From the sequence record PP355766.1: DNA of 64,000 bases. One strand, 5' to 3'. Positions 5,570-64,000 of the stretch are shown one piece after another. How positions within the stretch are numbered: position 1 is the stretch's first letter; every line of letters starts with the position of its first letter. The position numbers were made by a program, and so were the translations under genes. Below the pieces are notes generated by a model. It was not told the DNA's origin and did no database searches. It saw nothing but the letters and a program-made list of their open reading frames with translations.

Positions 5570-6320
5570 GTATCTTTAAGAACTCTCGTGAAAGCTCTTA
5601 AAGATACCGCCAGTAGGTAGGGGCCTTCCCCTGTTTAAGCTATGCGGCCCTTCTGTCAGACGTATCTTCCAGTTATAGTCAAGGTGACTAATATACCTTG
5701 CCAGATCCCGGCCAACGGATATCCGTCGGCTAATGCGGTCTAGGCGAGGGCACACTCCAAACAGGGGCACTTCTAGCCTGTGTAAGGGTGCTATAAATAG
5801 TGGTTATGCTTTCGCTCGGGGTGACTCCGGTCATGACTCCATTGTCACATGCTTACACAGGGTATACGAGCTTCCGCGGAGCTGTATACTCAGCCGTGTC
5901 CCACTTAGGTCTCGGAGCGACCGTTTGTACGAACGGTTATCCGAATACTCTTTCCCACTTAGAGTCAGGCGAGATCCCACCTCGCCAAAGTTCATACGAT
6001 CATCATGCCGTATTTAAGGACTAGTTTTGGCACTTCTGGAGAGCCATCCTCCACGCGGTCTGTTAAAATCACACCTCCGAATTTTCGATGTGAAGTTCGG
6101 CTATCTCTAGCCATCCAGCGTATGGTCGCTTCGCACCTGCCACTCTTACGTTCAAATCGGTTTAGGCGGTGGCAGCCCTCCGAAGTTCCGAGTTTGGTTG
6201 AGGCCGTCAGGTTTCCTCGTGGTTTAGCTGTTTCGTTCCCGCGAGTCTCCTAAGTCTTTCCCTAGGAGGGGAGGAGGTACTCCAGCAGCGAGTGGTTCGC
6301 CAATAGAACCATCAGTTATC
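5570..6320 (-). ncRNA. candidate large multi-helix ncRNA (~700-750 nt)
   Basis: No credible ORF; more than ten helices including perfect 5777-5786/5852-5861 and 5628-5636/5759-5767; wobbles favour the minus strand. Confidence 0.65.
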
Positions 6321-7396: not shown

Positions 7397-8401
7397 TCAA
7401 ATTTTCAATTTCGATTCGATAGTTTTAATACAGTACGCTTCTACCAGGGCGTCAAACACCGGATCATGTTTCGACGGGTAGACTCCCTCAGGAATCAGGT
7501 TGTAACGCTCGATTACGTCATGTGCGTATACTTCAGCACAGCGTACCAATGCTTTCCAGTCTCCTCCGAGAGCCTCAAAATAGTCACGCGGGTTACGGGC
7601 GCTAGAAATATCCCAAAACTTCCACGGAACGATCGCAGGGTCAGATGGGGAGAAGATGTTAGCCTGAGCTGCCACTGTTTCGTAGATGGACATGTCGAAC
7701 TGCGGGCCATTACCATAGTGGCGCAGAGAACGAGTGTCAATGCCCTGCTCGTCGATAATACCTTCGATTACCTGTTTTGCCTCTACGAACGGGCAGATCA
7801 GATCCATGAACGTATGCTTGGATACAGGTGATTCATGGGTCGGATTGCAAACTAGAACGGTAGACTCACCGTCTTTAGCGTTCAGGGCTTCAATAATGGA
7901 CAGTGACGGGGCACTACCAGCACGGGCCTCATTCATCCAGAATGCAATAGTTCCGGCGGACACTTTAGCACCTAGGGCCAACTGCTGGGCCACATTAGGG
8001 GTGCCTAAAACGATATACGGGTCTAGCGACAGATCTTTCAGCAGTACAAAAGCGAAAGACGGCATAGCGATAAAGGTGCTCTTGCAGTCTCCCGGAGTTC
8101 CCAGAGATTCGATATCGCAAACAGAGATCCAGCGGTCTTGTAAGTTTTGCATATTGTTTCCTTTGTTATTAAAGTTGCTTCTAGATGTGCTACCACATTT
8201 AGAAGCCACCTCCGGTGGTGGCTTAGTCATATCTTCGGACACATCCCAGTTTTCTTCCATAGACGGCCAGTCAGCCGCCCAATCTTCGAGTTCTTCGTAG
8301 CACGAATCCATCAGTTCCCGGGAGTTGACCCTAGAGTAATCTAGGGCCGACTTATGTGTCGCTGCACGATTGAAATCGTTTTTAGCTACAAAATTTCGCA
8401 T
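7397..8401 (-). CDS. DEDDh 3'-5' exonuclease (domain starts at internal ATG 8152), in frame with an upstream ~83-aa ORF
   Basis: CDIES (ExoI), GNGPQFD (ExoII), HDPVFDA (ExoIII); AAGGA RBS before 8152. Confidence 0.8.
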   Translation of the reverse strand: MRNFVAKNDFNRAATHKSALDYSRVNSRELMDSCYEELEDWAADWPSMEENWDVSEDMTKPPPEVASKCGSTSRSNFNNKGNNMQNLQDRWISVCDIESLGTPGDCKSTFIAMPSFAFVLLKDLSLDPYIVLGTPNVAQQLALGAKVSAGTIAFWMNEARAGSAPSLSIIEALNAKDGESTVLVCNPTHESPVSKHTFMDLICPFVEAKQVIEGIIDEQGIDTRSLRHYGNGPQFDMSIYETVAAQANIFSPSDPAIVPWKFWDISSARNPRDYFEALGGDWKALVRCAEVYAHDVIERYNLIPEGVYPSKHDPVFDALVEAYCIKTIESKLKI

Positions 8402-8811
8402 TATGCCTTCTTAGCGGGTTTGCGTTTTTGATTACGAGGCTTGTTTGCCTTGCCCGTAAATTTAATACCTACGCCGTAGCACAGGGCGCGAACATTCTCA
8501 CGGCTGTACTCGCAGCCAAAGATATTCGGCTTGACGCTACCGAAACGGCCCTGGGTCTTGCGCAGGACTTCTTTGGTGTCCGCCTTATCCGGCGTACTCC
8601 AGCCAACGATCTTCGAGACGTAGCCAGAGGTAGAACCCTTAGTTACCGGCTTTTTACGACGCGGGGCCGGTTTGCTTACAGCTGATGCTGCTTGAGTATC
8701 AGCCGGATGTTTACGCAGATGACGCTCCAGACGTGCTTTGCGATTCTCTTCAGTTTTAGGAAAAGTTGCAACTTTGGTTTCTACTGCTTTTTTAGAGGTC
8801 TGCTTAGCCAT
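8401..8811 (-). CDS. highly basic hypothetical protein (136 aa)
   Basis: K/R-rich; AAAGGA RBS; downstream of promoter 8857-8885. Confidence 0.8.
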   Translation of the reverse strand: MAKQTSKKAVETKVATFPKTEENRKARLERHLRKHPADTQAASAVSKPAPRRKKPVTKGSTSGYVSKIVGWSTPDKADTKEVLRKTQGRFGSVKPNIFGCEYSRENVRALCYGVGIKFTGKANKPRNQKRKPAKKA

Positions 8812-8856
8812 GATTTATTTCCTTTGTTTTGATTGGTTTCGTTAATTTATGGATCT

Positions 8857-8885
8857 ATTATACGTTAATTTTTAGCGTTTAGCAA
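8857..8885 (-). promoter_or_regulatory. T5-type early promoter
   Basis: TTGCTA-17-TATAAT. Confidence 0.85.
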
Positions 8886-9215
8886 CTGCGTTTTTTCATT
8901 TTCATCTACAAGCTCATCGAAGATGATGTACTCGTACCTATTACCGCCCGATGTGCTTCGCTTGCTCTTCCGAGCTGATGTACTGGTACCCGCCTTTGTT
9001 GTACGCTGGTGCTGTACAGAGTTTCTTTCGCTCAATTTCTTTAAGAGCGGCTCGTTCTCTTTCAGCCATCTCAGGATCCAGGATTTCCCGTGCCTGCGGT
9101 CTTGGTGGTAGACGCGTAGAGGGTTCCCCGATTTTGACGCTTCCAGAAACGCGGCGTAGAGATCGAGCTGGTACTGTGGTACGTTTGGGAACAAATCCCT
9201 CAAATCTGGTGCCAT
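8865..9215 (-). CDS. hypothetical protein (116 aa) with RRHGKS and YIIFDE motifs
   Basis: TAATG-coupled to the ORF 9215-9376. Confidence 0.65.
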   Translation of the reverse strand: MAPDLRDLFPNVPQYQLDLYAAFLEASKSGNPLRVYHQDRRHGKSWILRWLKENEPLLKKLSERNSVQHQRTTKAGTSTSARKSKRSTSGGNRYEYIIFDELVDENEKTQLLNAKN

Positions 9216-26867: not shown

Positions 26868-27066
26868 GTGGGTAGAGGATAAGCAAAAGAAAACCCTACC
26901 CGGTTACGTATTTATCGGGGCGTGGATTGAAAACAACGTGACACTATGCGAAATGCTTAGCCCTAAATCGCTAGGCAGAACGGTAACAACTTTCCAAGCA
27001 CTATGTGAACATTTTAATTGGGAAGGAAAGACCAAGAAGCTGTGCGAACACTACGAGGTTAAATAA
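26803..27066 (+). CDS. hypothetical protein (87 aa)
   Basis: GAGG RBS; TAATG-coupled to ligA. Confidence 0.65.
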
Positions 27067-28028
27067 TGCAACACGTTAAAGAATTTATCAAACTGTGCCA
27101 AGACGCGTACTACAAAGGTATGTCAATCATCTCTGATGAAGAGTATGATGCCTTAATTCGTCGCTTTCCGCTAGAGGAAGAAATTGGCCCCAAAGGTGAT
27201 GTACCTCACCTGTTCCGTATGTTCTCCCTACAGAAAGTGTACCCAGGCCGCGGCGAAGAAGTACCCTTCCAGGGCATTGAAACGCCGAAGCTCGATGGCT
27301 GTGCTATTTCACTTCTGTATATCGACGGAAAATTCGTTTCTGCGTTAACACGCGGTAACGGCGTCCTAGGTAATGATGTAACTCATAATGTGAAGTTACT
27401 GAACATTCCTAAACAGATCTCCCAAAAGACTCCGGTGCAGATTACTGGTGAAGTACACATCACCAAAGAAGTTGAAAATATGCGTAACTTCGCCTCTGGT
27501 GCTATTAACCTGAAAGATTCTGGAGAGTTTCTCTCCCGTATTGCGGAAGGTGGCCTGATGTTTACGGCCTATAGTATTCAGTGTGAAACCGGCAAAGTTG
27601 GCCTGACCGCTACTTTCTGTGGAGATATGCATATCCTTCAGGGTGATGGTTTTGTTACCTGTCTGGATATCTCCAGCCGAGTAGATTGGTTCCCAACGGA
27701 CGGCGTGGTAGTTCGTATGGACGGCAACAACCAATTTAACGCAGCAGGTTGGACTAACAAGTTCCCGCGTGGTGCGTACGCCATCAAAGAAGATGATGAA
27801 GGCGAGGTTACTACGCTAGAGCGGGTAGAATGGCAAGTGGGGGCTTCCGGTAAGGTTACTCCTGTTGGATACTTCACCCCGGTAGTCATCGACGACGCTG
27901 TCATCTCAAAAGCTACCCTGAATAACGTTGGCTATATCACTGCCCTTGACCTAGAAATCGGTTGCCAGATCCGCGTAATTCGTAGTGGTGGGGTCATCCC
28001 TCGCATCGTAGAACGTGTTTACGAGTAA
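27066..28028 (+). CDS. ligA: NAD-dependent DNA ligase, adenylation and OB subunit
   Basis: [47 protein letters not shown]. Confidence 0.95.
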
Positions 28029-28073
28029 CACTTGATTCAATAGATACACCGTGATGATTTTTTAAAGTAGTTA

Positions 28074-28197
28074 TTGACATTTTCATCGCCAGGGTGTATA
28101 CTATTATCATTCAGTTGAGGGAAAGAAATATTTGGTGAGAGACTGAGCTAAATTCTGAAAAATTTCGATTGCTTAGTCCTGATTTTCTTGCTATAAT
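28074..28197 (+). promoter_or_regulatory. two tandem promoters between the ligase halves
   Basis: TTGACA-17-TATACT (28074-28102) and TTGCTT-17-TATAAT (28169-28197). Confidence 0.75.
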
Positions 28198-28227
28198 ATT
28201 TATATAAATTGATGAGGAAGAAAATCA

Positions 28228-28977
28228 ATGAAAATTGAAATTCCACTGAATTGCCCCTCTTGTGGTTCGAAACTGGACTTAGTTAACGATCAGTTGTTCT
28301 GCCGTAACAAGTCTATGTGTCCAGCTCAAAGCAGTAAATTAATCGAGAACTTCTGCTCAAAGATGAAGTTAAAGGGCTTTGGCCCACAGACTATTGCTAA
28401 ACTGGAGATCACAAAAGTTTCAGAACTCTTTTCCCTGACTAAAGAAGATTTAGTCAGAGCTGTAGGTGATAAAGTCGCCACGAAACTTGAGCTAGAGTTG
28501 GAAACTAAGCTGAGACAAGATGTTGACTTTGGTTCGGTTCTTGGATCTCTTAGTATCCCTCTTATCGGTGAAGTTGCTGCTAAGAAATTATCCCAGCTTT
28601 ACAACGATTTCCAATCTGTGAAAGCGGAAGGTAAAGCTGGAGAAAACTTAGCTTCGTGGAAGAATACACCGGCAGGACAGGACGTAATTAATCTACCATG
28701 GAAATTCAGTGGGGCGCGGGAAACTCAAGTTACCCCGGCGACTGAATCCAACGGAGTTGTTCTTTGCATTACTGGTAAGCTCAACGACTTCAAAAATCGT
28801 GCGGACGCTACCAAATATCTAGAAAGTCTTGGGTACACGGTGAAAACCTCCGTTACTAAGGCTGTAAACTACTTAATCTGCGAAGATGAAACCAAGATCG
28901 GTTCTTCTTCATACAAAAAAGCACAATCGCTGGGCATCGAAGTCTTGACGATTAAAATTCTACTGGAGAATAAATAA
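28228..28977 (+). CDS. ligB: NAD-dependent DNA ligase, Zn-finger/HhH/BRCT subunit
   Basis: CPSCGS..C..C, KGFG, IPLIG, ITGK..SVTK..YLIC. Confidence 0.93.
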   Translation: MKIEIPLNCPSCGSKLDLVNDQLFCRNKSMCPAQSSKLIENFCSKMKLKGFGPQTIAKLEITKVSELFSLTKEDLVRAVGDKVATKLELELETKLRQDVDFGSVLGSLSIPLIGEVAAKKLSQLYNDFQSVKAEGKAGENLASWKNTPAGQDVINLPWKFSGARETQVTPATESNGVVLCITGKLNDFKNRADATKYLESLGYTVKTSVTKAVNYLICEDETKIGSSSYKKAQSLGIEVLTIKILLENK

Positions 28978-28979
28978 AA

Positions 28980-29738
28980 ATGGCTAAATTAACCTGGAAC
29001 GAAGAAATCACTGCATCCCTGACCGCTAAAGCTAACGCCCTGAACGCGACCGTTATCTCTCAGGAAGCTGTTGCTAACATCGCTGCTGAACTGGCTGCTG
29101 AAACTGGTAAAGAAGTTACCGCTCGTTCGGTTGGTTCTAAACTGCGTAAAGAAGGCTTCGAAGTGCAGAAAGCATCCGACGTAACCAAATCTCCGTGGAC
29201 TCCGGGTCAGGAAGATGAACTGGTTGCATTCCTGAACGATCATCCGGGTCAGTATACCTACGCTGAAATCGCTGCTGCTGTAGTTGGTGGTGCTTATACC
29301 GCTAAACAAGTACAGGGTAAAATCCTGAGCCTGGAACTGACCGCTGCTGTTAAGCCGACTGAAAAGGCCGCTGCTGTACGTAGCTTTAGCCCGGACCAGG
29401 AAGCTGCTTTCATTAACGCCGTTGCCAGTGGCGCGTCCGTTGAAGCAATCGCTGCTCAGTTCGAACGTACCGTTAAGCAGATCCGTGGTAAAGCTCTGAG
29501 CCTGCTGCGTGAAGGCCGTATCGAAGCTATGCCGGTTCAGGAAGTCTCTAATGCTAAGGCACGTGAAGACGTTCTGGAAGGTCTGAATATCTCCGATATG
29601 ACCGTTGCTGAGATCGCAGAAGCAACTGGTAAATCCGAGCGTGGTGTTAAGTCTATGCTGAGCCGCCGTGGTATCTCTGCTAAGGATCACGATGGTGTTG
29701 CTAAGCGCGCTAAACTTGACGCTAAATCCGCCAAGTAA
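28980..29738 (+). CDS. D5: T5 D5-like DNA-binding regulator
   Basis: Repeated HTH-like units; position after ligB. Confidence 0.8.
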   Translation: MAKLTWNEEITASLTAKANALNATVISQEAVANIAAELAAETGKEVTARSVGSKLRKEGFEVQKASDVTKSPWTPGQEDELVAFLNDHPGQYTYAEIAAAVVGGAYTAKQVQGKILSLELTAAVKPTEKAAAVRSFSPDQEAAFINAVASGASVEAIAAQFERTVKQIRGKALSLLREGRIEAMPVQEVSNAKAREDVLEGLNISDMTVAEIAEATGKSERGVKSMLSRRGISAKDHDGVAKRAKLDAKSAK

Positions 29739-29751
29739 TTGATTTGACCTG

Positions 29752-29784
29752 AGGGGAGAGGAATTTTGTTCCTCTCCCCTTTTT
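29752..29784 (+). terminator. rho-independent terminator
   Basis: AGGGGAGAGGAA-TTTTG-TTCCTCTCCCCT-TTTT. Confidence 0.9.
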
Positions 29785-29822
29785 CGTTTAAGTAGACGCT
29801 AACGCGGCGTAGAGAGTATCTT

Positions 29823-31301
29823 ATGTATAACGTCCAAGCAGTAGTTTTGAAAATGCTCCTAGCCTCCGATCAAAAGCAGGTGGCTCTAGAGACATTCTCT
29901 AGACTGCGCAAAGATCACTTCAATGACGCATTTACCGCGATCTACCAAGCTGTCCAGAATTATTACAAAAAGCATAACGGAATGCCTTCGTTAGATGCTC
30001 TGATGCTAGAGTCTAACAGAAACGCAAGGTTGTCTCAAGCACTAACTGTTTTAGCAAACACTCAGATTCCAGACGTTGACATATCGCATGCGATTCATGT
30101 CCTAGAGTCGGAATACACACAGGATCTATTCCTGAATCTGCTAGAAACTGATGTGTTGCAGGATATTACCATACTGGATCAGGGAGAATTACTTGATCGA
30201 GTAGCGGCTCTGCACATGAAGCTAGAGGAAAGAGTAACAACGACTGGTAAGGTCTTCAACGCCGATACTATGCGTGTTTTCAAGAGAAAAGAAGACTCCA
30301 TGTTAAATCTTATCTCTCTCGGCATCTCAAACGAATTTGATGCTCAACTTGGCGGAATTGCCAGAAAAGAAACACTGCTACTCGGTGGATGGCGTGGTAC
30401 AGGTAAATCAATCATCTGTTCTAACATTCAAGTAGCCCAGTATTACAACGGGGATATCGCCCCATATTTCTCCATCGAAATGCCAGAGAATGAGGTCTTT
30501 AGACGTAACCTAGCCATTATGGCCGGTGTTTCAGCTAAGGCTATGCGCAATGACTCCTTACAAGGTATTGAACTCAACAAACTTGCGAAGACTCGTGCAA
30601 AAATGTTCGAAGGCGGTCTGGAAGTATATAACGATTTTGTATCACGTTATACGCTCAACGAGATGAGTGACTTCCATGACATGGAGACTATGCTAATGCA
30701 GGAAAGACCCCTGCACACTCCGATGATCATTGTGTATGATCCGGAACTTAGTACAGCAACCATCGATGTTGAACTAACTAAGCTAACCTCCAAGTATGGG
30801 GACAAGGTAACAATCGCCCTGCTAGACTATATCAACCAGGTACGTTTGCCTGATACGAAGACATTAGATATGTATGATTGGAAGCAGCAGATGGTTGTCT
30901 CCTCTACATTCAAGTCTACGTGCCAAAAGCATAACGTTGCTGGTGTAGCTCCTTACCAGATTGACCAACAGGGTAACGCCCGTATGGCAAGAGGTATCCT
31001 CGACTCCTGTGATATGGCTGCAAATCTAAATGCTGCTAAACAGAACGAGGGGCATGACGGTGCAATCAAGTTTGACTTCGTAAAAACTCGTAACTCCGAG
31101 GGTATGACATTCATGCCGAAGATCAACTGGAACTCACTGCGTATGGATCAGACTTCTGACCTTAAACTAGAGGACATTCGTCAGATGGAAGCAGAGTTTG
31201 TTATCCCACTTGAAAGCGATAAACCGAAAGACAAACCAAAAAGGAAAAAGGCTTCGGATGAGGATACTAATCCCACCGGAGAATCCTCAAGAGACTTATG
31301 A
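29823..31301 (+). CDS. DnaB-like replicative helicase
   Basis: GGWRGTGKS, FSIEM, LLDYIN, KTRN. Confidence 0.9.
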   Translation: MYNVQAVVLKMLLASDQKQVALETFSRLRKDHFNDAFTAIYQAVQNYYKKHNGMPSLDALMLESNRNARLSQALTVLANTQIPDVDISHAIHVLESEYTQDLFLNLLETDVLQDITILDQGELLDRVAALHMKLEERVTTTGKVFNADTMRVFKRKEDSMLNLISLGISNEFDAQLGGIARKETLLLGGWRGTGKSIICSNIQVAQYYNGDIAPYFSIEMPENEVFRRNLAIMAGVSAKAMRNDSLQGIELNKLAKTRAKMFEGGLEVYNDFVSRYTLNEMSDFHDMETMLMQERPLHTPMIIVYDPELSTATIDVELTKLTSKYGDKVTIALLDYINQVRLPDTKTLDMYDWKQQMVVSSTFKSTCQKHNVAGVAPYQIDQQGNARMARGILDSCDMAANLNAAKQNEGHDGAIKFDFVKTRNSEGMTFMPKINWNSLRMDQTSDLKLEDIRQMEAEFVIPLESDKPKDKPKRKKASDEDTNPTGESSRDL

Positions 31302-31879
31302 GTAGAATAACCGAGCTTTTAGATCTCAAAGGGATTGAATACAGAGATACGGGTGGGGACATCCTCATCCGCTGTCTCAATCCTGACCATGAGGATGCAC
31401 ATCCAAGTTTACGTGTTGACCCCGATTCCGGGGTTTTTCACTGCCTAAGCTGCGGATTTGGTCGTGGTATACCAAGCATCTTTCATTACTTCAATGAAGA
31501 ACAGTACAGGACGTCGCCTAGACTCCTGAGAGTTCGCAGAATGATTAGTGACCTCCGAACCGAGGGTCGCAGTCTAGAAATTCCCGAATCAGCCATGATA
31601 TTCGATCAAGACTTTCGTGGTATCAAAGCAGAGACTTTCAAGAAATACTTTGCATTCCAACAAACAGAGGACTGGGAAGGTCGTGTAGTGTTTCCTATTA
31701 CGGATGCCGTAGGGAGAAACTTATTCTTCTTAGGCCGTAATATGGATAGCTCTGCCCCTCCGAAATATATGATTAGACCTAAGAAGGTCTCCCCTCCAAT
31801 CTTCCCTGTTCGCTATAACACCCCAGCCCTAATCCTAGTCGAAGGTATATTCGACATGTTGAATCTAGAAGAGGTGTAA
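31298..31879 (+). pseudogene. DNA primase, truncated at the segment junction
   Basis: Zn finger (CLNPDH...CLSC) and TOPRIM start ILVEGIFD, then a stop 2 codons after the junction; DxD motif missing. Confidence 0.85.
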
Positions 31880-32007
31880 AGCCGAAATCCGCCAATGCTA
31901 AAAAGAAATACACGCATTTGAATTATTGCTTAAAACATGCATTAGAGCGTATTCAACGATATGCTGATGAAAAATTTAACTACGTAATGAAAACGGTAAA
32001 TCTATGA
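31873..32007 (+). pseudogene. uvsW: 3' fragment of the UvsW helicase gene
   Basis: GVKPKSANAKKKYTHLNYCLKHALERIQRYADEKFNYVMKTVNL matches the UvsW C-terminus; ATGA overlap with uvsW.1. Confidence 0.9.
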
Positions 32008-32246
32008 TTAAATTTGAAGATATTTATGAAGCCACAATTCGTGAGGCTACTATCGATAACTTCATGAGTAAAATTAATTCTTGCCAGACCTTAGATGGTC
32101 TGGAAGAACTCGAGAAGTATTACGATAAGCGCTCTAAAGAAACTACTCTTGCTGATTCTGATGACATCATTGTGCGTGATGCTTTGGCGGGGCGTAGACA
32201 GGCTCTTGAAGCCGATTCTGAAGATGAAGATGACGAAGACTTCTAA
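32004..32246 (+). CDS. uvsW.1: UvsW.1
   Basis: FMSKINSCQTLDGLEELEKYY, acidic tail. Confidence 0.9.
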   Translation: MIKFEDIYEATIREATIDNFMSKINSCQTLDGLEELEKYYDKRSKETTLADSDDIIVRDALAGRRQALEADSEDEDDEDF

Positions 32247-32249
32247 TAC

Positions 32250-32280
32250 AAAAAAGCCCCGACCGAAAGGAAGGGGCAAA
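32250..32280 (-). terminator. terminator between convergent genes
   Basis: GCCCC/GGGGC stem with U tract on the minus strand. Confidence 0.65.
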
Positions 32281-32305
32281 GCCAATTGGCTACATCAACA
32301 CTAGA

Positions 32306-32473
32306 CTAAATTAAAAGCTGCGTTTCTTGTAATTGCTCTTCTGTGTCTTCAGTGACAGGCAATTCAATCGCATAATTATAGCAAGCTCCGGGATGAACCG
32401 GGCCTTTGTCTGTGTGGACAACCAATGCTTCATCGATTGGTCCTTTACAGACGACACATACCGTATTCGACAT
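32306..32473 (-). CDS. uvsY.-2: UvsY.-2-like protein (55 aa)
   Basis: MSNTVCVVCKGPID...GPVHPGAC; AGGAG RBS. Confidence 0.85.
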   Translation of the reverse strand: MSNTVCVVCKGPIDEALVVHTDKGPVHPGACYNYAIELPVTEDTEEQLQETQLLI

Positions 32474-32503
32474 GATTGTCTCCTTAGTTTACAGGTTTAT
32501 TTA

Positions 32504-32920
32504 TTACGCGCCAGCTTCAAACTGACGAAGGTCAATAATGTGCTTAATGCTAAAACCTCGTGACTTGATAGCATCCATTGCATCACTACAGAACTCCAAA
32601 AGAATTCCCCAATATTGCAATTTAGTATCTACACCCAAGATTTCTTTATCAGCGCTTAAAACAGTTTTCATTTCTGATTTTTCATATACATCCATGCATA
32701 CTTCACCACCAACCTCGCCACGGCCAGTGTAATAATCCAATCGTGCTTTAAGATTTTGCTTTTTGAGGGCATCTAATCTTAACATCTCTTTTCGACAAGT
32801 CGAGTGCTTACGCACCCATTTACCATACAGAACGGGGTTATTAGCCGCTTCATACTGTAGTTTAGTCTGGTCGATAATCAAATCATTATCCAATTCATCC
32901 TGTAATTCTTCTAATCTCAT
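32504..32920 (-). CDS. uvsY: recombination mediator UvsY
   Basis: KLQYEAANNPVLYGKW...YYTG..RGFSIK. Confidence 0.95.
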   Translation of the reverse strand: MRLEELQDELDNDLIIDQTKLQYEAANNPVLYGKWVRKHSTCRKEMLRLDALKKQNLKARLDYYTGRGEVGGEVCMDVYEKSEMKTVLSADKEILGVDTKLQYWGILLEFCSDAMDAIKSRGFSIKHIIDLRQFEAGA

Positions 32921-32961
32921 TCTATCTCCACTCTACTGTTTCTTGGGAAGGACTAGTCCCA

Positions 32962-33372
32962 TTATACTCTACTGCTAGAGTTAGCATTACTACGCATCTG
33001 TATGCGTATACGCTCTAGCGTATCAGGGTCGTCTACTATAGAAAACTGCACGGTGACAATTATAGCGTTATCGTCATATAACGGAAGCACATCAACCGAT
33101 AGACGATTAATCCTAGGCTCATAATTACGCACAGCAGAGACTATATTACGCTTTATCGTATCACCAGTTAACGGAGTCATGTTTTCAAATAATTCGTTTG
33201 TGATATCACAACCAAACGCTGGGTCAAATGGCCGAGACCCCTTTCTTGTGGTTATTATTCCAAGAAGGCTATTTTTAACTGATCGAGCTCCTACTGTTTT
33301 TGACACATCGGTATCCCAAGCAAGTCGCATCTCTGGGTCAAGGTCAGAATATAGTTTATCGATATTGCTCAT
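32962..33372 (-). CDS. 25: baseplate wedge gp25
   Basis: LYSDLDP...SVKNSLLGIITTRKGSRPFDP. Confidence 0.95.
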   Translation of the reverse strand: MSNIDKLYSDLDPEMRLAWDTDVSKTVGARSVKNSLLGIITTRKGSRPFDPAFGCDITNELFENMTPLTGDTIKRNIVSAVRNYEPRINRLSVDVLPLYDDNAIIVTVQFSIVDDPDTLERIRIQMRSNANSSSRV

Positions 33373-34004
33373 GACATAATCTTAAAGAATTCTTTAAGCC
33401 CCTTAATTACATGAATGTGAGAAATTCCGCATTCACAAGTAATGGGAACTGCCAATTGAACCTGTGGCTTCAATAGCATATTTTTGATGTTAACTACATC
33501 TTCGGTTGTAATAGCAGAATATAAATCATCGATTTCTGCATCGTTTAAATCATTAAAGTAAATCTGCTCATTTCCAACCACGATATAATCTATGCATTTT
33601 GATATCATCATTGGAATGTCGGAATCGTCAAAAAGATTAGGATACTTAAACTTTATCTTGAATCCCTTTAAGTCATACCAGAGGTCTTCTGGAGGATCGA
33701 TTTGCGCATGTGTATAGTTTAATGGCACAGGAATTTTACGCCCACAGGTGCAATTCCAGGTCACCTCATGATTAACCTCGCCTATACTATGCGCCCAAAG
33801 TATAACTATAAGTAATTCCGATTCTTGTTTGTTTAACCCAGTAGCATTAGTACATTCTCTGAGCAATGCTTTAACACATTCATCGATTGTACCGTTTTTC
33901 TTCGCTGCAATTAAATTAGCGTATTCTTCTAGTGTAAAAGCTCGGCACTGGATATTCTTGCCATTTATTCTTGTTTCAAATTTATATGTGATGTTCATAT
34001 CCAC
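33369..34004 (-). CDS. 26: baseplate hub assembly gp26
   Basis: RAFTLEEY, CTCG, CECG; synteny. Confidence 0.9.
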   Translation of the reverse strand: MDMNITYKFETRINGKNIQCRAFTLEEYANLIAAKKNGTIDECVKALLRECTNATGLNKQESELLIVILWAHSIGEVNHEVTWNCTCGRKIPVPLNYTHAQIDPPEDLWYDLKGFKIKFKYPNLFDDSDIPMMISKCIDYIVVGNEQIYFNDLNDAEIDDLYSAITTEDVVNIKNMLLKPQVQLAVPITCECGISHIHVIKGLKEFFKIMS

Positions 34005-34018
34005 TCCTCTTATTCAAT

Positions 34019-34030
34019 TATTTATAAATA
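34019..34030. promoter_or_regulatory. overlapping divergent T4 late promoters (genes 26 and 51)
   Basis: TATAAATA on + (34023-34030) and on - (34019-34026). Confidence 0.85.
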
Positions 34031-34049
34031 GTATAAAGAGGATTACCTT

Positions 34050-34808
34050 ATGGCCAATATAGTTAGATGCGAATTACCAGATGGTGTCCAACGTTTTAAG
34101 CCATTTACCGTAGAAGATTATAGAGACCTTTTATTGGTTAGAAACGACATGAACACCAAGTCTGAAGAAGAACAAAAACAACTTATAGCAGAATTAATGG
34201 ATGATTATTTTCATGACCATCCTGTCGAGTATCGTCCTTATATATTTCTTAAGGTATTTCTTTCAAGTATTGGTAAAACTAAAATACCAGTCAGAATGAA
34301 GTGCCCAAAATGCGGAAAATACAAGCAGTATCTTTTTAATCTTAATCAGCCTCCGTTGACAAATCCGAAAGTAGAGGTTGCAGGATTAACGCTTAAGTTC
34401 AAAAAACCCATAGATATAATTGACGATACAGGTAAAATGATTTTAGACAACATTATATCTGTGAAGGATTCATCTGGGGAATACGCGTGGAATGAATTGA
34501 GCGATAGCAATAAATTGACCGTTATCGATGCTATAGATGTTGAAACCTTGGAAAAGATTTTATCGCAGATGAAGCCCTTTAATTTTGAATTAAAAACATC
34601 ATGCTGTGATACCACGACAGTATTAAAATATGATAACATTGTCGATATTTTTAAGCTATTGCTACATCCTGACGAGATTTTCACATTTTATCAGATTAAC
34701 CATAGATTGGTTTCTCAAGGTAAATACGATTTGAATTCTATAATGAAAATGCTGCCTATCGAACGTGGCATAACCTTATCGCTTATTGAAAAGGACCTTA
34801 AATCATGA
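34050..34808 (+). CDS. 51: baseplate hub assembly gp51
   Basis: [21 protein letters not shown]. Confidence 0.9.
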
Positions 34809-35947
34809 CAACACAAAGATTAGGATATCCTAATATAAGCATAAAATTATATTCTGGATATGATGCGTGGCTAGCTAATAGATTCGTTGAATTAGCAGCT
34901 ACATTTATTACATTAACAATGAGAGATTCATTACGCGGGACTAATGAGGGTCTACTTCAGTTTTATGACTCAAAAAATATGCATACGCGTATGAACGGTG
35001 ATGAACTAGTTCAAATATCTGTTGCAAACAGTAACACATCGAGAACACAAACCCGAATTTATGGGATTAAACACTTTACGGTTGGTGTTGATGATAAAGG
35101 CGATAGCATTATCACCCTTCAGCTTGGAACGCTGCATGACATAATGAATCTCAAGTTCAGCAGAGCGTTTTTTAGTTCTGCATATGAAACTATAAAAGAA
35201 ATGATAGGTGCAATGTATGTTGACCAACCATTGATTGCTCCTCCTATCAACGGAATTAACGCTTACGTCCCACGGGTTCCCTGGACTAGTACCCTCAAAG
35301 ATTACTTACGATATGTTAGAAATGTAGGCATTTCTACAGACAACGATCAATTTATTTTTGCGTGGGAAGATATCACCGGAATTAACATGATGGATTATGA
35401 ATCAATGATATCCCAGGATCCAAATGTATTCATGTTCGGGGCTCCTCAAACAATAGGTCAGTTTGCTGCAGGATTAAAATATCCATTAGCATGGGATTTT
35501 GAATGGCTTGTTAAATCAAATAGATATAATAGAAATCCCATGAAAAATGCAACATTTTATGCACACTCATTTGTTGACAAAGATGTTACCCGAATTATTA
35601 ATGGAGAAGGCCAAAACAGCGTATTCATTAATAGATCAGGCGGATATTCTGACATGATTTTTAGGAATGGCTATGAAGAAGCACTACGCATTTCTACGAT
35701 GGCTCAATATGACGGGTATGCTCAAACTAAATGTTACGGTAATTTTGAACTAACTCCTGGAATGAAAATCAATTTTGTTGATCTAAAGGACCAGTTCAGA
35801 ACTGACTTTTATATAGATGAAGTTATCCATGAAATATCAAATAACACATCTATAACTAACTTATATATGTTCACAAATGGCTCTGCCCTTGAACCTGTAG
35901 ATTTGATTAAGGTGAAAAATGAACTTAAACGTGATTCTTCCTATTAA
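34805..35947 (+). CDS. 27: baseplate hub gp27
   Basis: [26 protein letters not shown]. Confidence 0.95.
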
Positions 35948-42708: not shown

Positions 42709-42886
42709 AATTAATTATTGTTACTGTACGCCAAACTTGTAGTCCATTTACAGACTCATACTCTTCAATGTTTTCTTTGAAGTTTCTTAATGTGTTAATG
42801 TTATTAAACTCAAGAACTTCTGTGTGAACAGAAATACCACCACGTCCGTCAAGAGATTTAGCAATCACTTCGTATAATACTTTCAT
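42707..42886 (-). CDS. Alt.1-like protein (59 aa)
   Basis: ATGA overlap with the gene 30 stop; MKVLYEVIAKSLDGRGG... Confidence 0.7.
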   Translation of the reverse strand: MKVLYEVIAKSLDGRGGISVHTEVLEFNNINTLRNFKENIEEYESVNGLQVWRTVTIIN

Positions 42887-44355
42887 TTTATTCCTGTTGC
42901 CTCTGTAAAGTTCACGCCAAATGCAGCTTCGAATGTATTAGCCACTTCTTTATCATATCTGCGTTGTTTAATGATAGGCAAGAATAATCCTACTGTACCA
43001 TCATCACGACCTTCAGCAGTTACCCAACCATTGCATTCAAGTTCCCAGATAGTTCCCGGAAGAGAATCTCTGAGCTTCCATAAATGAGTACGGTCAAGTT
43101 CATGTAATTCTTCGGGCTTATCTTTAAGACCTGACCCAGCGTTAACACGAATACGACCACATTCTGATACGAACATTAAGCCGCCCATTTTACCAGGTTG
43201 TTTTCTATGCTCGTACGAACCGACACATTTCAAATCGACAGTGATAACCTCTTTAAATTTAACGAGGTTCTTAGAACGCTTATCTTCCCAATAAGCACCG
43301 ATATTCTTAAGGATAATACCTTCGAGACCTTGGTCTACGTATGTCTTATAGATAGCCCGAGCTTCATGGATGTTATGTACGACATGGTTTTCAATTAGAA
43401 TAACCTTGTCATAGCCTTTGCTCATCATTTCCAATGCACGGAAGCGTACATCATAAGCAAATCCAGGAACTTTACCTTCGGAATATACTACATCAAGCGG
43501 AACATAATCCCAAACTTGGAATCTCATACCTTCTGCTTCTTCGGCAGATATTGTTCCTTTAATGGCCTTATTAGCCAATCCGTTTGATTCTGTACGAGCC
43601 GTCTGTTGGAATTCCTTAGCCTTACTTAGCTCAGGAAGCTCAGGCTCTTTAAACATATCAAACAGGTCGTTTTCTTCTTCTTTCACTTCGACATGATATA
43701 CCAACTCGCCGTCAATCATCACACCGTTAGGATGGCGTTCTCGGGCTTCTTTGGTCATCTCGATAAGTTGACGCTTAAGTTTATCTAGACCCAGGTATTC
43801 ATTACCGGAACGAGTAAGAAGAGTTACATCATCTAATTCATCTCCGCGGATTTCAGCGAAGCATCGAGCTCCATCGGCTTTAAGCTGAGCAAATGCAGGG
43901 AACTTAATATACGATAGCGCTTTCTCAGAATAAGCTGATGCTAACATCTGTGGCATCTCAGGAATTAATTTCTTCCATACCTTATTAGCAATAGAACCTG
44001 AAGCGCCGCAACGCATATCCTTAAGAAGGACACGGACTAGTACACTAGCATCACCCTCGTTCATCTTAGAGAGCAAATCTACTAGCCCCTGGATTGCCAT
44101 ATTACCAGTAAGTACTCGTGCTGCCAGAATGTCTTGGAGGTAATCTAGACCATCAGAAAACGTCTTTGAAGGAACATTTGGATATTTAACGGGAGTATAT
44201 TCTGGAACTTTCTTAATAAAGAATTTAAATCGCCCGGAATACGCCAGCAGATAAGCTCGCTTTAAATCAACGTTATCTTTATTGTCAATGAGAATTTGGG
44301 TTTTGGCTTTAGAACCCTTAGCATCTTCAATTGCTTTGATGATATCAAAAATCAT
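42883..44355 (-). CDS. 30: ATP-dependent DNA ligase gp30
   Basis: QLKADGAR, IDGELV, FQVWD, EGIILK, VKFKE. Confidence 0.97.
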   Translation of the reverse strand: MIFDIIKAIEDAKGSKAKTQILIDNKDNVDLKRAYLLAYSGRFKFFIKKVPEYTPVKYPNVPSKTFSDGLDYLQDILAARVLTGNMAIQGLVDLLSKMNEGDASVLVRVLLKDMRCGASGSIANKVWKKLIPEMPQMLASAYSEKALSYIKFPAFAQLKADGARCFAEIRGDELDDVTLLTRSGNEYLGLDKLKRQLIEMTKEARERHPNGVMIDGELVYHVEVKEEENDLFDMFKEPELPELSKAKEFQQTARTESNGLANKAIKGTISAEEAEGMRFQVWDYVPLDVVYSEGKVPGFAYDVRFRALEMMSKGYDKVILIENHVVHNIHEARAIYKTYVDQGLEGIILKNIGAYWEDKRSKNLVKFKEVITVDLKCVGSYEHRKQPGKMGGLMFVSECGRIRVNAGSGLKDKPEELHELDRTHLWKLRDSLPGTIWELECNGWVTAEGRDDGTVGLFLPIIKQRRYDKEVANTFEAAFGVNFTEATGIK

Positions 44356-54325: not shown

Positions 54326-55258
54326 CTATTCTTCAGAAATTTCAATTTCTTTTTCGTACTCTTTTGGAACATATCCTGCCCAGTACTTCAAGAACACCCT
54401 TTCGAGGTCTTTAAGCAGTTTATCTACATCTACAGTTCCTTCGTACATGTTCATGATAACACCAAACAGATGGCGCTGATTAACCGTTGCTTTCTGAGCA
54501 GCAATAGCGTAGTCTTTACGAGCACGACCTCTGTATTCATCATAGAATGACTGACATAGCTCAAGTGACTTTCCGAGGTAATCTAGATAAGCTTGCTCAA
54601 ACGCAGAAATTTTCTTAATTGCGTATTCATCTCCAGCAAAAAGAGAACGCAAGTCATCGGAATTTGCAGATACGACAGACGCAAACAGTCTTTCATTTGA
54701 CGTTATTGAGTCTTTAGTGTGATGAAGAGCAGAATACCATTCGGTCTTAACCTTAAATCTCTGTCCAGTGTTTAGAACTGCAATGTACCCTTCTACGCCT
54801 TCAAGTTCACGAACACCTTCAACCCAAGTTGTGGGGTCAGAAATTCCGTAAGCATTGATTAAATAAGGACGAATTTTAGCGTTAGCGTACAAATCATCAT
54901 ATTTAATATACTCGCCAGTTGTGTTATTACGGACGTTTAACACAAACAGCTGTGGCTCCTGATATGCTAAAACAACACGATTATTAGGTGAAACAAATTC
55001 CATGTTTACCGTATAACCATCTAGCGCTAACTCAAGAATAACCTGATGAAGCGAAGAATATTCTTCACTGTTAAGCAAAGCTGAGGCTTGTCTTGCCTGG
55101 TCACTGTAGAGAGATGTTTTTGACTTAAGGTATAGATACCCATCATCGACATAAGATGATACTAGAGAGCCATCAGCCTTATCCATAATGTATTCTACAT
55201 CACTAATATCAATTCCCATCGTTAGTGGGTTTTCATTCAAATTGAAGAATTTTTCCAT
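54326..55258 (-). pseudogene. rnlA: RNA ligase 1, 5'-truncated at the junction
   Basis: Begins at internal MEKFFNLNENP; KADG catalytic motif present; N-terminal ~70 aa absent; no RBS. Confidence 0.9.
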
Positions 55259-56032
55259 ACAAATATTTCTGACGATTTAGTTGGTCGTACGATTTATACT
55301 GCTTCCGGTCGTAGTAATGTGACTTATATCGAGAGAGAATACCGGGATGGTCGTCTGTTATGGCGTATTACTATTCATAACTTATCAGGACGGTTCATTG
55401 AAGGCCAGGAAATTAAATCAGAGCGTACGGACTTTGAGGGTATTATAGTTCAAGGTGTCCGTGGAAAGGATATGCTGAGTAATAACATTGATTATATAAA
55501 CCGCAGCCGTTCTTACTATGTTATGAAAATTAAGTCTCAGCTTCCTACTTCTCGGTTCCGCGACGATGTATTAAGGTTTGTTCATCCGGTAGGTTTCGGT
55601 TTCATTGGTATAACGTTGTTGACAATGTTTATCAATAGCGGTTTAAATATGAAGCATGTTGAGACTATCATAAATAAACTCAAGAACTATAAATGGGATG
55701 CAGGACTGCCATCAGTTTATCCTGATAGAGTTGCTATTATCGCTTCAGATGATACAATAGAAAGAGACCCAATAACTAATGAGCCTAGGTATTCTTCACG
55801 TGCTCAAGCTGGTGAACCTTTCCCGTTACCTGCTAACTATAATCAAGAAAATAACAATAGTGTTATCGCTGGACAAAACCCTGGACAACGACGTAAGCCG
55901 TTAAGTCCTACGTTTGACCAATCAGCAGTAACGTTTGCTAATTATCGCGATTTAGTTAACCAACGTCTTAAAGACGATGCAGGTAATCCTCGCGATCCTG
56001 AAAATCCGACACAGGTAAAAATTGATGAGTAA
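55259..56032 (+). pseudogene. 7: 3' fragment of baseplate wedge gp7
   Basis: Frame open from 55259; FVHPVGFGF...GNPRDPENPTQVKIDE matches the gp7 C-terminus. Confidence 0.9.
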
Positions 56033-57050
56033 TTCAACAAGAGCAAGTTCAACGCGTAGCACGATTTATCGTGCTATCATTACATCTAAGTTTAGAACTG
56101 AAAAGATGTACACATTTTATAAATCAATTGGTCCGGGAACGGACCAAAACACATTGTATGTTTCATTTGGAAAAAGCACTCCGTGGTCAGATAACGAATC
56201 TGAACCTGGGTTTGCACCTCCATACCCGGCCGATAATGAAGACGGTGTGGTTGATATTTGGACAAATATGATGGGTGCAGTCAAAATTGAATCATCTATG
56301 CTTGACTGTGTTGTTCCAAGAAGAGACTGGGGAGATACAAGATATCCTAATCCACGCACATTTTTAATCGGCGATATCGTTGTTGCTAACTCTGCGCCAT
56401 ATAACAGAACTGATGCTGGATTTGGATGGATGGTATATAGATGTATTGATGTTCCAAAGAATGGAATGTGTTCAATTGGTAATCTTACAAGCAAAGAAGA
56501 ATGTATTAAGCTTGGGGGTAAATGGACACCATCCACTATTTCCGGTTCAGCGCCTCGTGGACGTGGTGATGCAAACGGTACCGTCGATTTGGGTGATGGA
56601 TATCTTTGGGAATATCTATATGAAATTCCAGCCGACGTATCAATTAACAGATGTACAAATGAATATATCGTAGTTCCTTGGCCAGAAGAGATTGAAGAAT
56701 CTCCAGCTCGTTGGGGATTTCAAAACAACTTAACTTGGCAGCAAAACGACTTTAACCTAATCTATCGTATGAAGTGTAATACGATTAGATTTAAAGCATA
56801 CCTTGATGCAATTTATTTTCCGGAGTTTAGTCTTCCGGGAAATACTGGGTTTAGGCAGTTGTCAATTATAACTAATCCGCTTGAAGTTAAGCCAATGCCA
56901 AATTCTCCTAACGTTAAGGCTGAAAAAGGTTGGTATAGCGCTTCTGGTCTTGAAAGACAGTCAGGTGAAATGATTTACATGGAAAATCGGCAACCTATTA
57001 TACGTTCAATGGACCAAACAGAAGAGTTAAATTTAATTTTCGAGTTTTAA
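56025..57050 (+). CDS. 8: baseplate wedge gp8
   Basis: IYRAIITSKFRTEKM. Confidence 0.95.
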   Translation: MSNSTRASSTRSTIYRAIITSKFRTEKMYTFYKSIGPGTDQNTLYVSFGKSTPWSDNESEPGFAPPYPADNEDGVVDIWTNMMGAVKIESSMLDCVVPRRDWGDTRYPNPRTFLIGDIVVANSAPYNRTDAGFGWMVYRCIDVPKNGMCSIGNLTSKEECIKLGGKWTPSTISGSAPRGRGDANGTVDLGDGYLWEYLYEIPADVSINRCTNEYIVVPWPEEIEESPARWGFQNNLTWQQNDFNLIYRMKCNTIRFKAYLDAIYFPEFSLPGNTGFRQLSIITNPLEVKPMPNSPNVKAEKGWYSASGLERQSGEMIYMENRQPIIRSMDQTEELNLIFEF

Positions 57051-57052
57051 TT

Positions 57053-57078
57053 ATGGGGAGCCTTTGGCTCCCCATTTT
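57053..57078 (+). terminator. terminator after gene 8
   Basis: ATGGGGAGCC-TTT-GGCTCCCCAT-TTTT. Confidence 0.85.
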
Positions 57079-57080
57079 TA

Positions 57081-57088
57081 TATAAATA
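57081..57088 (+). promoter_or_regulatory. late promoter for gene 9
   Basis: TATAAATA. Confidence 0.85.
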
Positions 57089-57116
57089 AGACTATACTTT
57101 GATATGAGGTTAACCT

Positions 57117-58028
57117 ATGTATACAGATAAGGGTAAAAAAATAATTGACGTCGGTGAGATTGGTAATGCTTCTACCGGCGACATTCTGTATGATGGCGGT
57201 GTGAAAATTAATGATAACTTCGACGCCATTTATAACGCCTTCGCTGATCAACGATTATTTGCAGCTGGTGGTGGAGCTTTAAACCAAAAAATCCACGCAA
57301 CAAGTTATTACCAAAAGATAAAATTTGGTGATGCTAACTCGGCCGGTACAGTTCCGATGGGTTCATGCATAGATGCTGATTGCTCAGAAGGGGCAGTTCA
57401 AATTCGTCTTTCAAAAGGTAAAGCGGGAGAAGCTGTATTCGTTGTAAATAGTAATGGCTCAGCATCAAAAGCTAGATCCATAAAAATAACAACAAACGGC
57501 GAAGGTGTAGCAGATGCGTTTAAAGACGGATCGCGAGAATTGATTATCAACACACCAAGATGTAGAATTGAATTGTGGTGTGTTGAAGTCAAAGCTAACG
57601 GTGCTGCAGTTTGGGATTATTCAATTTCAAGTATGTTTGGCAGCACATATTCGCCGTTAGAAGCTACATATAATTTAACGAGTTCTCCTATTAATATTCG
57701 GCTTGGATATAACGATGATTACTCTACTGTTAAATTGTTATTAAGCTTCAGCGCAAATCCAGGTGGTCAAACCATCAAAAGGCAATCATCTGAAGTCATG
57801 CTTATGATTGACCCGACTATTACTTCATCAGCGCCAAACGGAAGAGTATTTGACACTGAATATGCAGTGTTAAGAAGCGGTGAATCATCTGAAAATGAAA
57901 AGATGTATTCTATTTCATACTCTATTAACGCGCAGAAAGATTTAATATGCACAGCTTCAACATCTTATGGAAACGCACGTTTGGCAGTTAAAGTTATTGC
58001 TACACAGACCGTAGGGGTATCTCAATAA
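57117..58028 (+). CDS. 9: long tail fibre connector gp9
   Basis: IDVGEIGNASTGDILYDGGVKINDNF. Confidence 0.95.
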   Translation: MYTDKGKKIIDVGEIGNASTGDILYDGGVKINDNFDAIYNAFADQRLFAAGGGALNQKIHATSYYQKIKFGDANSAGTVPMGSCIDADCSEGAVQIRLSKGKAGEAVFVVNSNGSASKARSIKITTNGEGVADAFKDGSRELIINTPRCRIELWCVEVKANGAAVWDYSISSMFGSTYSPLEATYNLTSSPINIRLGYNDDYSTVKLLLSFSANPGGQTIKRQSSEVMLMIDPTITSSAPNGRVFDTEYAVLRSGESSENEKMYSISYSINAQKDLICTASTSYGNARLAVKVIATQTVGVSQ

Positions 58029-59851
58029 TGAAACAAAATTTGATAGTAGGCCAATCAGTAGATGATGGGTCTGGTGATTACCTCCGTAAAGGTGGTCTTA
58101 AAATTAATAACAACTTTGATGATTTATATTCAGAGTTAGGTGATGGTTCAGTTCCATTCGCAGCAGGTGCATGGAAAACTTTTAAAGCTAGCCCTACTGG
58201 AACTACTTTAAATGCTAAGTTTGGTCAGGCCTTTGCTATTAATACCCAGGCAGCAAGAGTTAACGTTCAGCTTCCAAAGGGTACAGCCAACGACTATAAC
58301 AAAGTTATTAAACTTCGTGATGTTTGGTCAACCTGGCGATTAAGCCCAATCACAGTTATTCCTGCTCAAGGCGATACATTAAAGGGTTCAGCTTCTCCTA
58401 AAATTTTCAATACTAACTTCCAAGATTTGGAATTGGTTTATTGCGCCCCTGGCCGCTGGGAATATATTGAAAATAAAACGGTAGATAAGCTAACTAACGG
58501 TAACTTAAGTACTGTAGCGAAAAAATCAATTATTGCTACTGCGGGTCAGACTGACTTTCTTAACATTTTTGATGGCGTAGAATATAACGAAGACTCGCTT
58601 AATGTATATCGTCGTGGTAATATTTTATATTACGGTGAAACCAGCGTTATGGATAAAGCCAATGCTGATTACGGTTCTCCTGGAACAGTAGCAGGTCAAT
58701 TGGTAGAATTAAACGGTAAAGACATTCGTTTAAAAGTTCCATGTGTTGAAGGGGAAGTAATAACATTTGAAACCTTCCTAGATGGAATTGGTGTTTATCG
58801 GTCTTCATACAACAAGTTGGCTATCCAGATACGAGATTCAGCCCAGACTACATCCCAGACGATTCCTGGGTCAATGATAGTAGATAACCTTGCTACTCTC
58901 CGCAGAATCACTCTGGATGACATGGGTGTACTTCCGGGCGTAGGGGTAAATCCTAACTCGCTTGAAATTTCATTGAACGGAAAGGAATTACTCGAAGCTG
59001 GAACTGCAGGTCTTCCTTTATTTTATTGTGAAGGCGCGGAAGGTGGATATGCAGAAGACTGTATAAACAATGGTGGTCAATGGGTAAATTCTAACCAAGA
59101 CTATAGACTGGAATTTGACTCAACTGGTACTAACGTCGAAGCTATTATTTTTGGTGAGGCGTTTGAAGATAAAGACCTTCTTACCGTCCGTTGGTTCAAT
59201 AATAACATCGGTACTACTATGGATATTGATGATATCATGGCAGAAACCGACCAAGTGTATATGAATGCTGAGCAATTAGTAACTCTAAAAAATCGCATTG
59301 AATACACTAACTATGATGAACCTAATCAGAAGAATATGCGTCCGGTTGCTGACGATATTATGATTAAAGTCAATAATATTGCAGCATTTTTTGACGTAAT
59401 TTATCCGATTGGCACGATTTATGAAAACGCTCACAACCACGCAAACCCTGCTGACTATATGGGATTTGGGGTGTGGAAGCTTTATTCACAAGGCCGTGTT
59501 ACTGCTGGTTGGAATAATGATTCATCTGATCCTTATTTTTCGCGTAACAACAATAACTTAAACGAAAATGGTCAGCCATCATTAACAGCAGGTGGAACGG
59601 TTGGAGATTTGACATTTACGTTAGGAAAAGAACACATTCCTGAACTAATGTCAAGAGATAAAGTTCTAATTTCAGACCCTGAACATGGAAGCGTAGTTAT
59701 CGGTGGATGTCAATTAGACCCAGACGCGCAGGGACCAGGTTATTCTAAATACCGTGAAGACACTGTTGCTGTAAACAACGGTGTAGTTCCAAATGACATC
59801 ACTAAAATTCAGCCAACAATCACCGTTTATCGTTGGATTAGGGTAGGTTAA
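58028..59851 (+). CDS. 10: baseplate wedge gp10
   Basis: DDGSGDYLRKGG..IYPIGTIYEN..TVYRWIRV. Confidence 0.95.
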   Translation: MKQNLIVGQSVDDGSGDYLRKGGLKINNNFDDLYSELGDGSVPFAAGAWKTFKASPTGTTLNAKFGQAFAINTQAARVNVQLPKGTANDYNKVIKLRDVWSTWRLSPITVIPAQGDTLKGSASPKIFNTNFQDLELVYCAPGRWEYIENKTVDKLTNGNLSTVAKKSIIATAGQTDFLNIFDGVEYNEDSLNVYRRGNILYYGETSVMDKANADYGSPGTVAGQLVELNGKDIRLKVPCVEGEVITFETFLDGIGVYRSSYNKLAIQIRDSAQTTSQTIPGSMIVDNLATLRRITLDDMGVLPGVGVNPNSLEISLNGKELLEAGTAGLPLFYCEGAEGGYAEDCINNGGQWVNSNQDYRLEFDSTGTNVEAIIFGEAFEDKDLLTVRWFNNNIGTTMDIDDIMAETDQVYMNAEQLVTLKNRIEYTNYDEPNQKNMRPVADDIMIKVNNIAAFFDVIYPIGTIYENAHNHANPADYMGFGVWKLYSQGRVTAGWNNDSSDPYFSRNNNNLNENGQPSLTAGGTVGDLTFTLGKEHIPELMSRDKVLISDPEHGSVVIGGCQLDPDAQGPGYSKYREDTVAVNNGVVPNDITKIQPTITVYRWIRVG

Positions 59852-59852
59852 A

Positions 59853-61870: not shown

Positions 61871-61878
61871 GGAATAAT

Positions 61879-63645: not shown

Positions 63646-63647
63646 TG

Positions 63648-63671
63648 AAAGGGACCTTCGGGTCCCTTTTT
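63648..63671 (+). terminator. terminator after wac
   Basis: AAAGGGACC-TTCG-GGTCCCTTT-TT. Confidence 0.9.
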
Positions 63672-63673
63672 CG

Positions 63674-63681
63674 TATAAATA
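63674..63681 (+). promoter_or_regulatory. late promoter for gene 13
   Basis: TATAAATA. Confidence 0.85.
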
Positions 63682-63701
63682 GAATATAAAGAGGAGCTTA
63701 T

Positions 63702-64000
63702 ATGTCATACAACACATACAACCCAAAAACGCTTAAAGACGCTATACTTCGACGTCTAGGAGCGCCGGTAATTAATGTCGAAGTAACTGAAGACCAAATT
63801 TATGATTGTATTCAACGAGCATTAGAGTTGTATGGTGAATACCACTTTAACGGATTGAATAAAGGCTATCAAGTTTTTTATATTGGAAAAGATGAAGCTG
63901 ACAACGCAAGATTTTTAAATGGTGTGTTTGATTTGCGTGGTCGTAATGTATTTGCTGTCACTCAAATCGTTAGAACAAATGTAGGTTCATTAACTTCAAT
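63702..64000 (+). CDS. 13: neck protein gp13 (5' part, runs off the window)
   Basis: [38 protein letters not shown]. Confidence 0.95.

Follow-up and report, generated by a model that had tools for sequence, protein, structure and literature searches.

Genes and features of the window

The DNA analysed here, referred to as the window, is a stretch of 64,000 nucleotides that is identical (100%) to bases 62001-126000 of GenBank record PP355766.1. The record is entitled "Klebsiella phage vB_Kpn_AM_K4, complete genome" (K4 hereafter), and describes a linear molecule of 288,685 bp, filed under Straboviridae, with K. pneumoniae ATCC 33495 as host. An earlier reading of the window from its letters alone (the sequence-only reading) had divided it into a T5-like and a T4-like part, meeting at 31872/31873. 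A database comparison of each side bears this division out. Both sides are 100% identical to PP355766.1; beyond the record itself, the left side matches many Sugarlandvirus genomes (109-114 kb, 98.7-98.8% identity) and the right side many Jiaodavirus genomes (166-174 kb, 98-99% identity), three of them sister isolates that were submitted together with K4. The features on which the analysis of this first join rests are as follows.

1-31872: end of contig 1 (last 31.9 kb; the contig is record 1-93872), Sugarlandvirus (T5-like, Demerecviridae), colinear with DevonBitter and vB_Kpn_K7PH164C4, GC 0.457
27066-28977, plus strand: NAD-dependent DNA ligase split between 27066-28028 and 28228-28977 (two ORFs), a native Sugarlandvirus gene (Pfam)
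31298-31879, plus strand: truncated DnaG-type primase ORF, 193 aa (191 native residues, then E, V and a stop from T4-like DNA)
31872/31873 (record 93872/93873): blunt join of contig 1 and contig 2, placed by three-way alignment, loose ends in public runs and the block map
31873-32007, plus strand: end of Jiaodavirus uvsW, last 44 codons and stop, 44/44 identity to residues 457-500 of K5 UvsW
31873-55258: contig 2 (23,386 nt), Jiaodavirus (T4-like), colinear with KSKp from 32024 down to 8128 at about 98% identity, GC about 0.39
42883-44355, minus strand: ATP-dependent DNA ligase of the T4 gp30 type, native to the Jiaodavirus part (Pfam DNA_ligase_A_M, E = 6.5e-24; annotated lig in the record)

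The ligases at 27066-28977 and 42883-44355 confirm that an NAD-dependent and an ATP-dependent enzyme are both present, as had been noticed from the sequence. In the NAD-dependent ligase, the first ORF carries DNA_ligase_aden and OB-fold domains and the second a BRCT domain (Pfam). The two ORFs lie 199 nt apart, and the identical split is annotated in DevonBitter and in K7PH164C4; thus, the split is a native Sugarlandvirus feature and stands outside the artefact described below. In the same part of the window, a stretch of 127 nt (window 6008-6134, record 68008-68134) aligns twice, to adjoining positions of the Sugarlandvirus reference, which reflects either a tandem 127-nt duplication in the reference or the collapse of one copy in the K4 contig.

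Position and character of the join

A three-way alignment of the window with its two nearest relatives, DevonBitter and vB_Kpn_AM_K5 (K5), places the break at 31872/31873, exact to the base and inside two genes, where the sequence-only reading had put it. To the left, the window tracks the DevonBitter (Sugarlandvirus) primase as far as ...GAATCTAGAAGA, and to the right it tracks the end of uvsW from K5 (Jiaodavirus), starting with GGTGTAAAGCC... The next base in DevonBitter is T and the preceding base in K5 is C, so the parents share 0 nt of microhomology at the join. Flanking repeats were looked for around 31872/31873 and none were found, in keeping with the earlier remark that no repeat was visible. 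The join is therefore blunt, with neither homology nor a repeat.

Base composition changes at the same point, as had also been noted, with GC falling from 0.457 on the left to 0.393 on the right. The claimed change of promoter type, however, could not be confirmed: the comparison, made solely with counts of the T4 late-promoter octamer TATAAATA, gives 7 occurrences on the left and 6 on the right of the join, and thus no contrast.

Primase and UvsW are cut at the join, and most of their missing parts lie elsewhere in the record

Over residues 1-191 the primase ORF matches the DevonBitter primase (294 aa) without a single difference. In the full-length protein the Toprim domain occupies residues 178-271 (Pfam), so that the truncation falls 13 residues into it, and a Pfam search of the truncated protein finds no Toprim match left. 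The primase is thus cut within Toprim, with 191 of 294 residues kept, as the sequence-only reading had proposed.

The rest of the gene was sought with tblastn, using the full primase against PP355766.1. Residues 1-192 are found at the join, residues 192-256 are present twice, at record 278132-278324 and 278325-278517, and residues 257-294 are found at record 237722-237835. The two copies are each 193 nt long, both start at the base that follows the break, and they differ from each other at 18 of the 193 sites, including the first base (T/C) and the last (A/G). These copies are the two arms of a variant bubble. An uninterrupted 294-aa primase can be read from contig 1 through either 193-nt allele and on from record 237722; therefore, the phage has a whole primase gene, and the break exists in the record alone. 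From two alleles that differ at 18 sites it also follows that the lysate held two Sugarlandvirus variants. Contig 1 stops within the primase at the last base that these two co-assembled variants have in common, since the base after it is the first site (T/C) at which they differ. On the primase side of the join, the one side where this is seen, the contig thus ends at a branch point of the assembly graph.

On the other side, the 44-aa translation of 31873-32004 is identical at all 44 positions to residues 457-500 of the 500-aa K5 UvsW, and the uvsW codon phase is kept from the first base after the join; the earlier identification of these residues as the last 44 of UvsW is correct. The full-length gene product carries UvsW_N, ResIII and Helicase_C domains (Pfam). 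Residues 1-431 of UvsW were located with tblastn at record 237630-236338, and residues 432-456 were not found in PP355766.1. Correspondingly, the 106 nt of uvsW directly upstream of the join (KSKp 32025-32130) are absent from the record, probably because contigs below about 105 nt were dropped. For both genes, then, parts missing at the join are found elsewhere in the record (primase residues 192-294 and UvsW residues 1-431).

A second join in the window

The window contains a further join of the same blunt kind, this time between two pieces of Jiaodavirus DNA, and again with a gene cut on each side.

54326-55258, minus strand: remnant of RNA ligase 1 without its first 73 codons (KSKp gene 7909-9060; contig 2 ends at KSKp 8128)
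55258/55259 (record 117258/117259): blunt join of contig 2 and contig 3, where KSKp 8128 is followed directly by KSKp 60712 and the query is ungapped
55259-56032, plus strand: last 257 codons of baseplate wedge gp7 (KSKp gp7 59939-63037, minus strand; contig 3 starts at KSKp 60712)
55259-64000: first 8.7 kb of contig 3 (19,623 nt), Jiaodavirus, colinear with KSKp from 60712 downward at 98.7-98.9% identity

The ATG with which the RNA ligase 1 remnant ORF starts, exactly at the join, is in frame by chance. At 55258/55259 gp7 loses its first 775 codons, and the ORF in its remnant is 55319-56032.

Block structure of PP355766.1

The whole record was mapped by blastn against one reference per genus, OY979402 for Sugarlandvirus and PQ306550 for Jiaodavirus. 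It resolves into 164-185 blocks (about 170-185), the number varying with the way in which adjacent alignments are combined. Blocks are internally colinear with one reference each, and from one block to the next the reference coordinate and strand jump. From the head of the record to its tail the block lengths run 93,872; 23,386; 19,623; 6,010; 5,550; 5,473; 5,301; 4,145; 4,146; 4,079; 3,864; 3,737; 3,669; 3,637; 3,590; 3,163; 3,037; 2,930 and so on, down to 105 nt. T5-like and T4-like blocks are intermixed and are ordered by size alone, in descending length and regardless of genome order. The correlation of order with length is strong (Spearman -0.96), and none of 10,000 shuffles is equally sorted. 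Stretches without a match in either reference fall into the size series too: one of 1,198 nt, for example, lies between blocks of 1,230 and 1,152 nt. No N spacers are present at the joins.

Automatic segmentation leaves 19 small departures from strictly descending order, which were only partly resolved by hand. The large departures are blocks that were merged or split (3,590 + 3,163; 1,231 + 1,307; 1,087 + 1,079 nt). A block of 6,753 nt, for instance, is made up of two contigs (3,590 and 3,163 nt) whose reference positions happen to be nearly adjacent.

In total, the record comprises about 169 kb of Jiaodavirus-like sequence, 111 kb of Sugarlandvirus-like sequence and 8.5 kb of other sequence, and its length is approximately that of one Sugarlandvirus plus one Jiaodavirus genome. 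The roughly 8.5 kb that match neither reference (for example record 241561-242758, 251419-252409 and 255944-256698) may come from the host, from a third phage or from variable phage genes. In record 262-288 kb many other small blocks also occur in near-identical pairs, which suggests that the lysate contained Jiaodavirus variants as well.

The join in public sequencing runs

In a run-index search, many public runs contain sequence from both sides of the join. With a 4-kb query across the join, the best public run holds 0.77 of the sampled words. With an 80-nt query centred on the join, from which 5 words were sampled, no public run has more than 2/5, which is the share of query words that do not span the join (20/50).

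Contigs from four runs (X1, X2, X4 and X12), which come from four studies and contain both phages, were compared over window 28873-34872. These are samples other than the reads of the K4 submitter, and reflect the parental phages. All contigs in the four runs stop at 31872 or start at 31873, and no joints across 31872/31873 are reported in any of them. Past 31872 the loose ends continue the primase (T/CAAAGGTTGC...), and those that lead up to 31873 belong to uvsW (...ATCGACGACCTC). In X1, X4 and X12 the first base past 31872 is C, as in the second K4 arm, and for X4 and X12 the match to that arm extends over the full loose end. Depth differs between the left and the right side of the join (21.6 vs 99.9 in X4, and 43.7 vs 17.5 in X1). 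The comparison shows that both genes are continuous in nature, and the join was not found outside the record.

Many unrelated public runs, from wastewater, landfill, silage and gut and including two named-organism runs, contain a Sugarlandvirus together with a Jiaodavirus, both at about 98-99% identity to the window. The Jiaodavirus contigs of X4 and X12 are nearly equal in length (17,545 and 17,562 nt).

Origin of the join

The join is almost certainly a database artefact (probability about 0.98), in which the size-sorted contigs of a mixed lysate were joined and deposited as one genome. On this reading, the vB_Kpn_AM_K4 lysate would have held at least one Sugarlandvirus and at least one Jiaodavirus, together with closely related variants, and the assembler would have broken where the variants diverge, giving about 170-185 contigs. 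The length-sorted contig file would then have been joined into a single sequence and deposited as a complete genome of 288,685 bp. The break at 31872/31873 is the first of the joins: here the longest contig (93,872 nt, Sugarlandvirus) ends and the second longest (23,386 nt, Jiaodavirus) begins. The data show directly how the blocks are built and ordered by size, where the missing gene parts lie, that there is a bubble, and that the other samples examined lack the join; we infer that the pasting took place in the submitter's workflow.

The sequence-only reading had explained the junction as an assembly or concatenation chimera of two phages. The size-sorted map of the whole record, the gene parts found elsewhere in it and the lack of any contig across the join in the four runs compared support this, and specifically concatenation. 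The scale needs refinement: about 170-185 contigs were joined, rather than two genomes at one point, and at least two Sugarlandvirus variants are involved.

One alternative is that the assembler itself made a mis-join, an error of the graph or of scaffolding via a shared repeat, with the rest of the record a proper assembly. Both phages are clearly in one read set, as the block map shows, and chimeric contigs do arise from mixed lysates. However, with 0 nt of overlap between the parents and no repeat nearby, there is no substrate for a k-mer overlap, and a mis-join of that kind was rejected; a mis-join via a repeat is likewise excluded because no sequence is shared at the join. Moreover, about 170-185 blocks in descending size, joined without N spacers, are unlike the output of a scaffolder. 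Overall, an assembler error is very improbable.

A real hybrid molecule, with Jiaodavirus and Sugarlandvirus DNA fused, for example through illegitimate recombination in co-infected cells, and then packaged, is less probable still, to the point of being scarcely credible. Co-infection as such is possible, as the two share a host strain and are found together in many public samples. However, the two joins of the window interrupt four genes (primase, uvsW, RNA ligase 1 and gp7), the missing gene parts lie elsewhere in the record with order and strand scrambled, and blocks ordered by length are unlike the product of any biological process. A length of 288.7 kb exceeds those of the related records (109-114 kb and 166-174 kb), which would argue against packaging in either capsid. 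The join is missing from all public runs examined: none holds more than 2/5 of the sampled words, and the four runs compared have parental ends. The record does not amount to a coherent genome that could be packaged and that has a single, unbroken set of essential genes. With its size-sorted order, its scrambled and duplicated fragments and the missing parts of its cut genes located elsewhere in it, a natural hybrid is excluded as an account of the deposited record; the earlier judgement that a viable hybrid is implausible is upheld on the same evidence. Rare Sugarlandvirus-Jiaodavirus hybrid molecules in the K4 lysate, beside the artefactual record, which would have arisen by illegitimate recombination when both phages infected one Klebsiella cell, have a negligible probability, and nothing seen points to them.

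Finally, insertion of one genome into the other (in the order T5, T4, T5), a reading built on length arithmetic, is rejected by the block map, which has about 170-185 interleaved pieces.

Sister records and consequences for curation

The concatenation of contigs is not confined to K4. The last 14 kb of K5 (PP355767.1, 160001-174364) and of K2 (PP355764.1, 160001-174438) consist of paired, small, scrambled blocks in descending size, and both records are 174 kb long, vs about 167 kb for the genus. The tail of K3, from the same submission, is colinear with the reference. The K2 and K5 records, covered over their last 14 kb, show in these tails the same concatenation problem as K4.

The join has no biological significance, and its value lies in curation. 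PP355766.1 is filed under Straboviridae, yet about 111 kb of its sequence is from Demerecviridae. As labelled, a complete Straboviridae genome of 288.7 kb, it would pass for a jumbo phage. Statistics on genome size, taxonomy, comparisons of gene content and the classification of reads are all distorted by a record of this kind. In a virome study (PMC13589070), "Klebsiella phage vB_Kpn_AM_K4" is listed among the abundant species, and its rise is reported to go along with that of the genus Sugarlandvirus. This joint rise would be expected if Sugarlandvirus reads were assigned to PP355766.1. In a search of the literature on vB_Kpn_AM_K4 no paper describing the phage itself was found, only this virome study, which cites it as a taxon. 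PP355766.1 should be flagged, as should the K2 and K5 records.

Comparison with related genomes and other concatenated records

Among Sugarlandvirus genomes, DevonBitter (OR896848) and vB_Kpn_K7PH164C4 (OY979402) are colinear with window 1-31872. Identity to them is 98.7-98.8% over the 4.9 kb beside the join and 91.5-98.7% in blocks further left, and they have in common with the window a replication module made up of the split NAD-dependent ligase, a DnaB-like helicase and the primase. Unlike these genomes, the 93.9-kb contig of K4 begins in the giant tail-fibre gene and ends in the primase, and the region at 25.4-43.7 kb of the Sugarlandvirus reference is present in K4 as small blocks spread over record 186-288 kb.

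On the side of Jiaodavirus, which belongs to the Tevenvirinae within Straboviridae, KSKp (PQ306550) and the sister isolates K3 and K5 are about 98-99% identical to window 31873-64000, and gene content is alike, with the uvsW tail, uvsY, baseplate genes, the ATP-dependent ligase and structural genes. Unlike in KSKp, the Jiaodavirus part of K4 is represented in the window by two contigs, and the remainder is distributed over about 150 further blocks.

In its overall organisation K4 resembles other multi-contig assemblies that were deposited as a single sequence. As in K4, these have blunt non-homologous joins, cut genes and duplicated allelic fragments, with a total length that is the sum of two genomes and an order that follows the size order of the contig file. 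Compared with other concatenated records, K4 is an unusually clear case, in that its size order and its bubble alleles have both survived unaltered.
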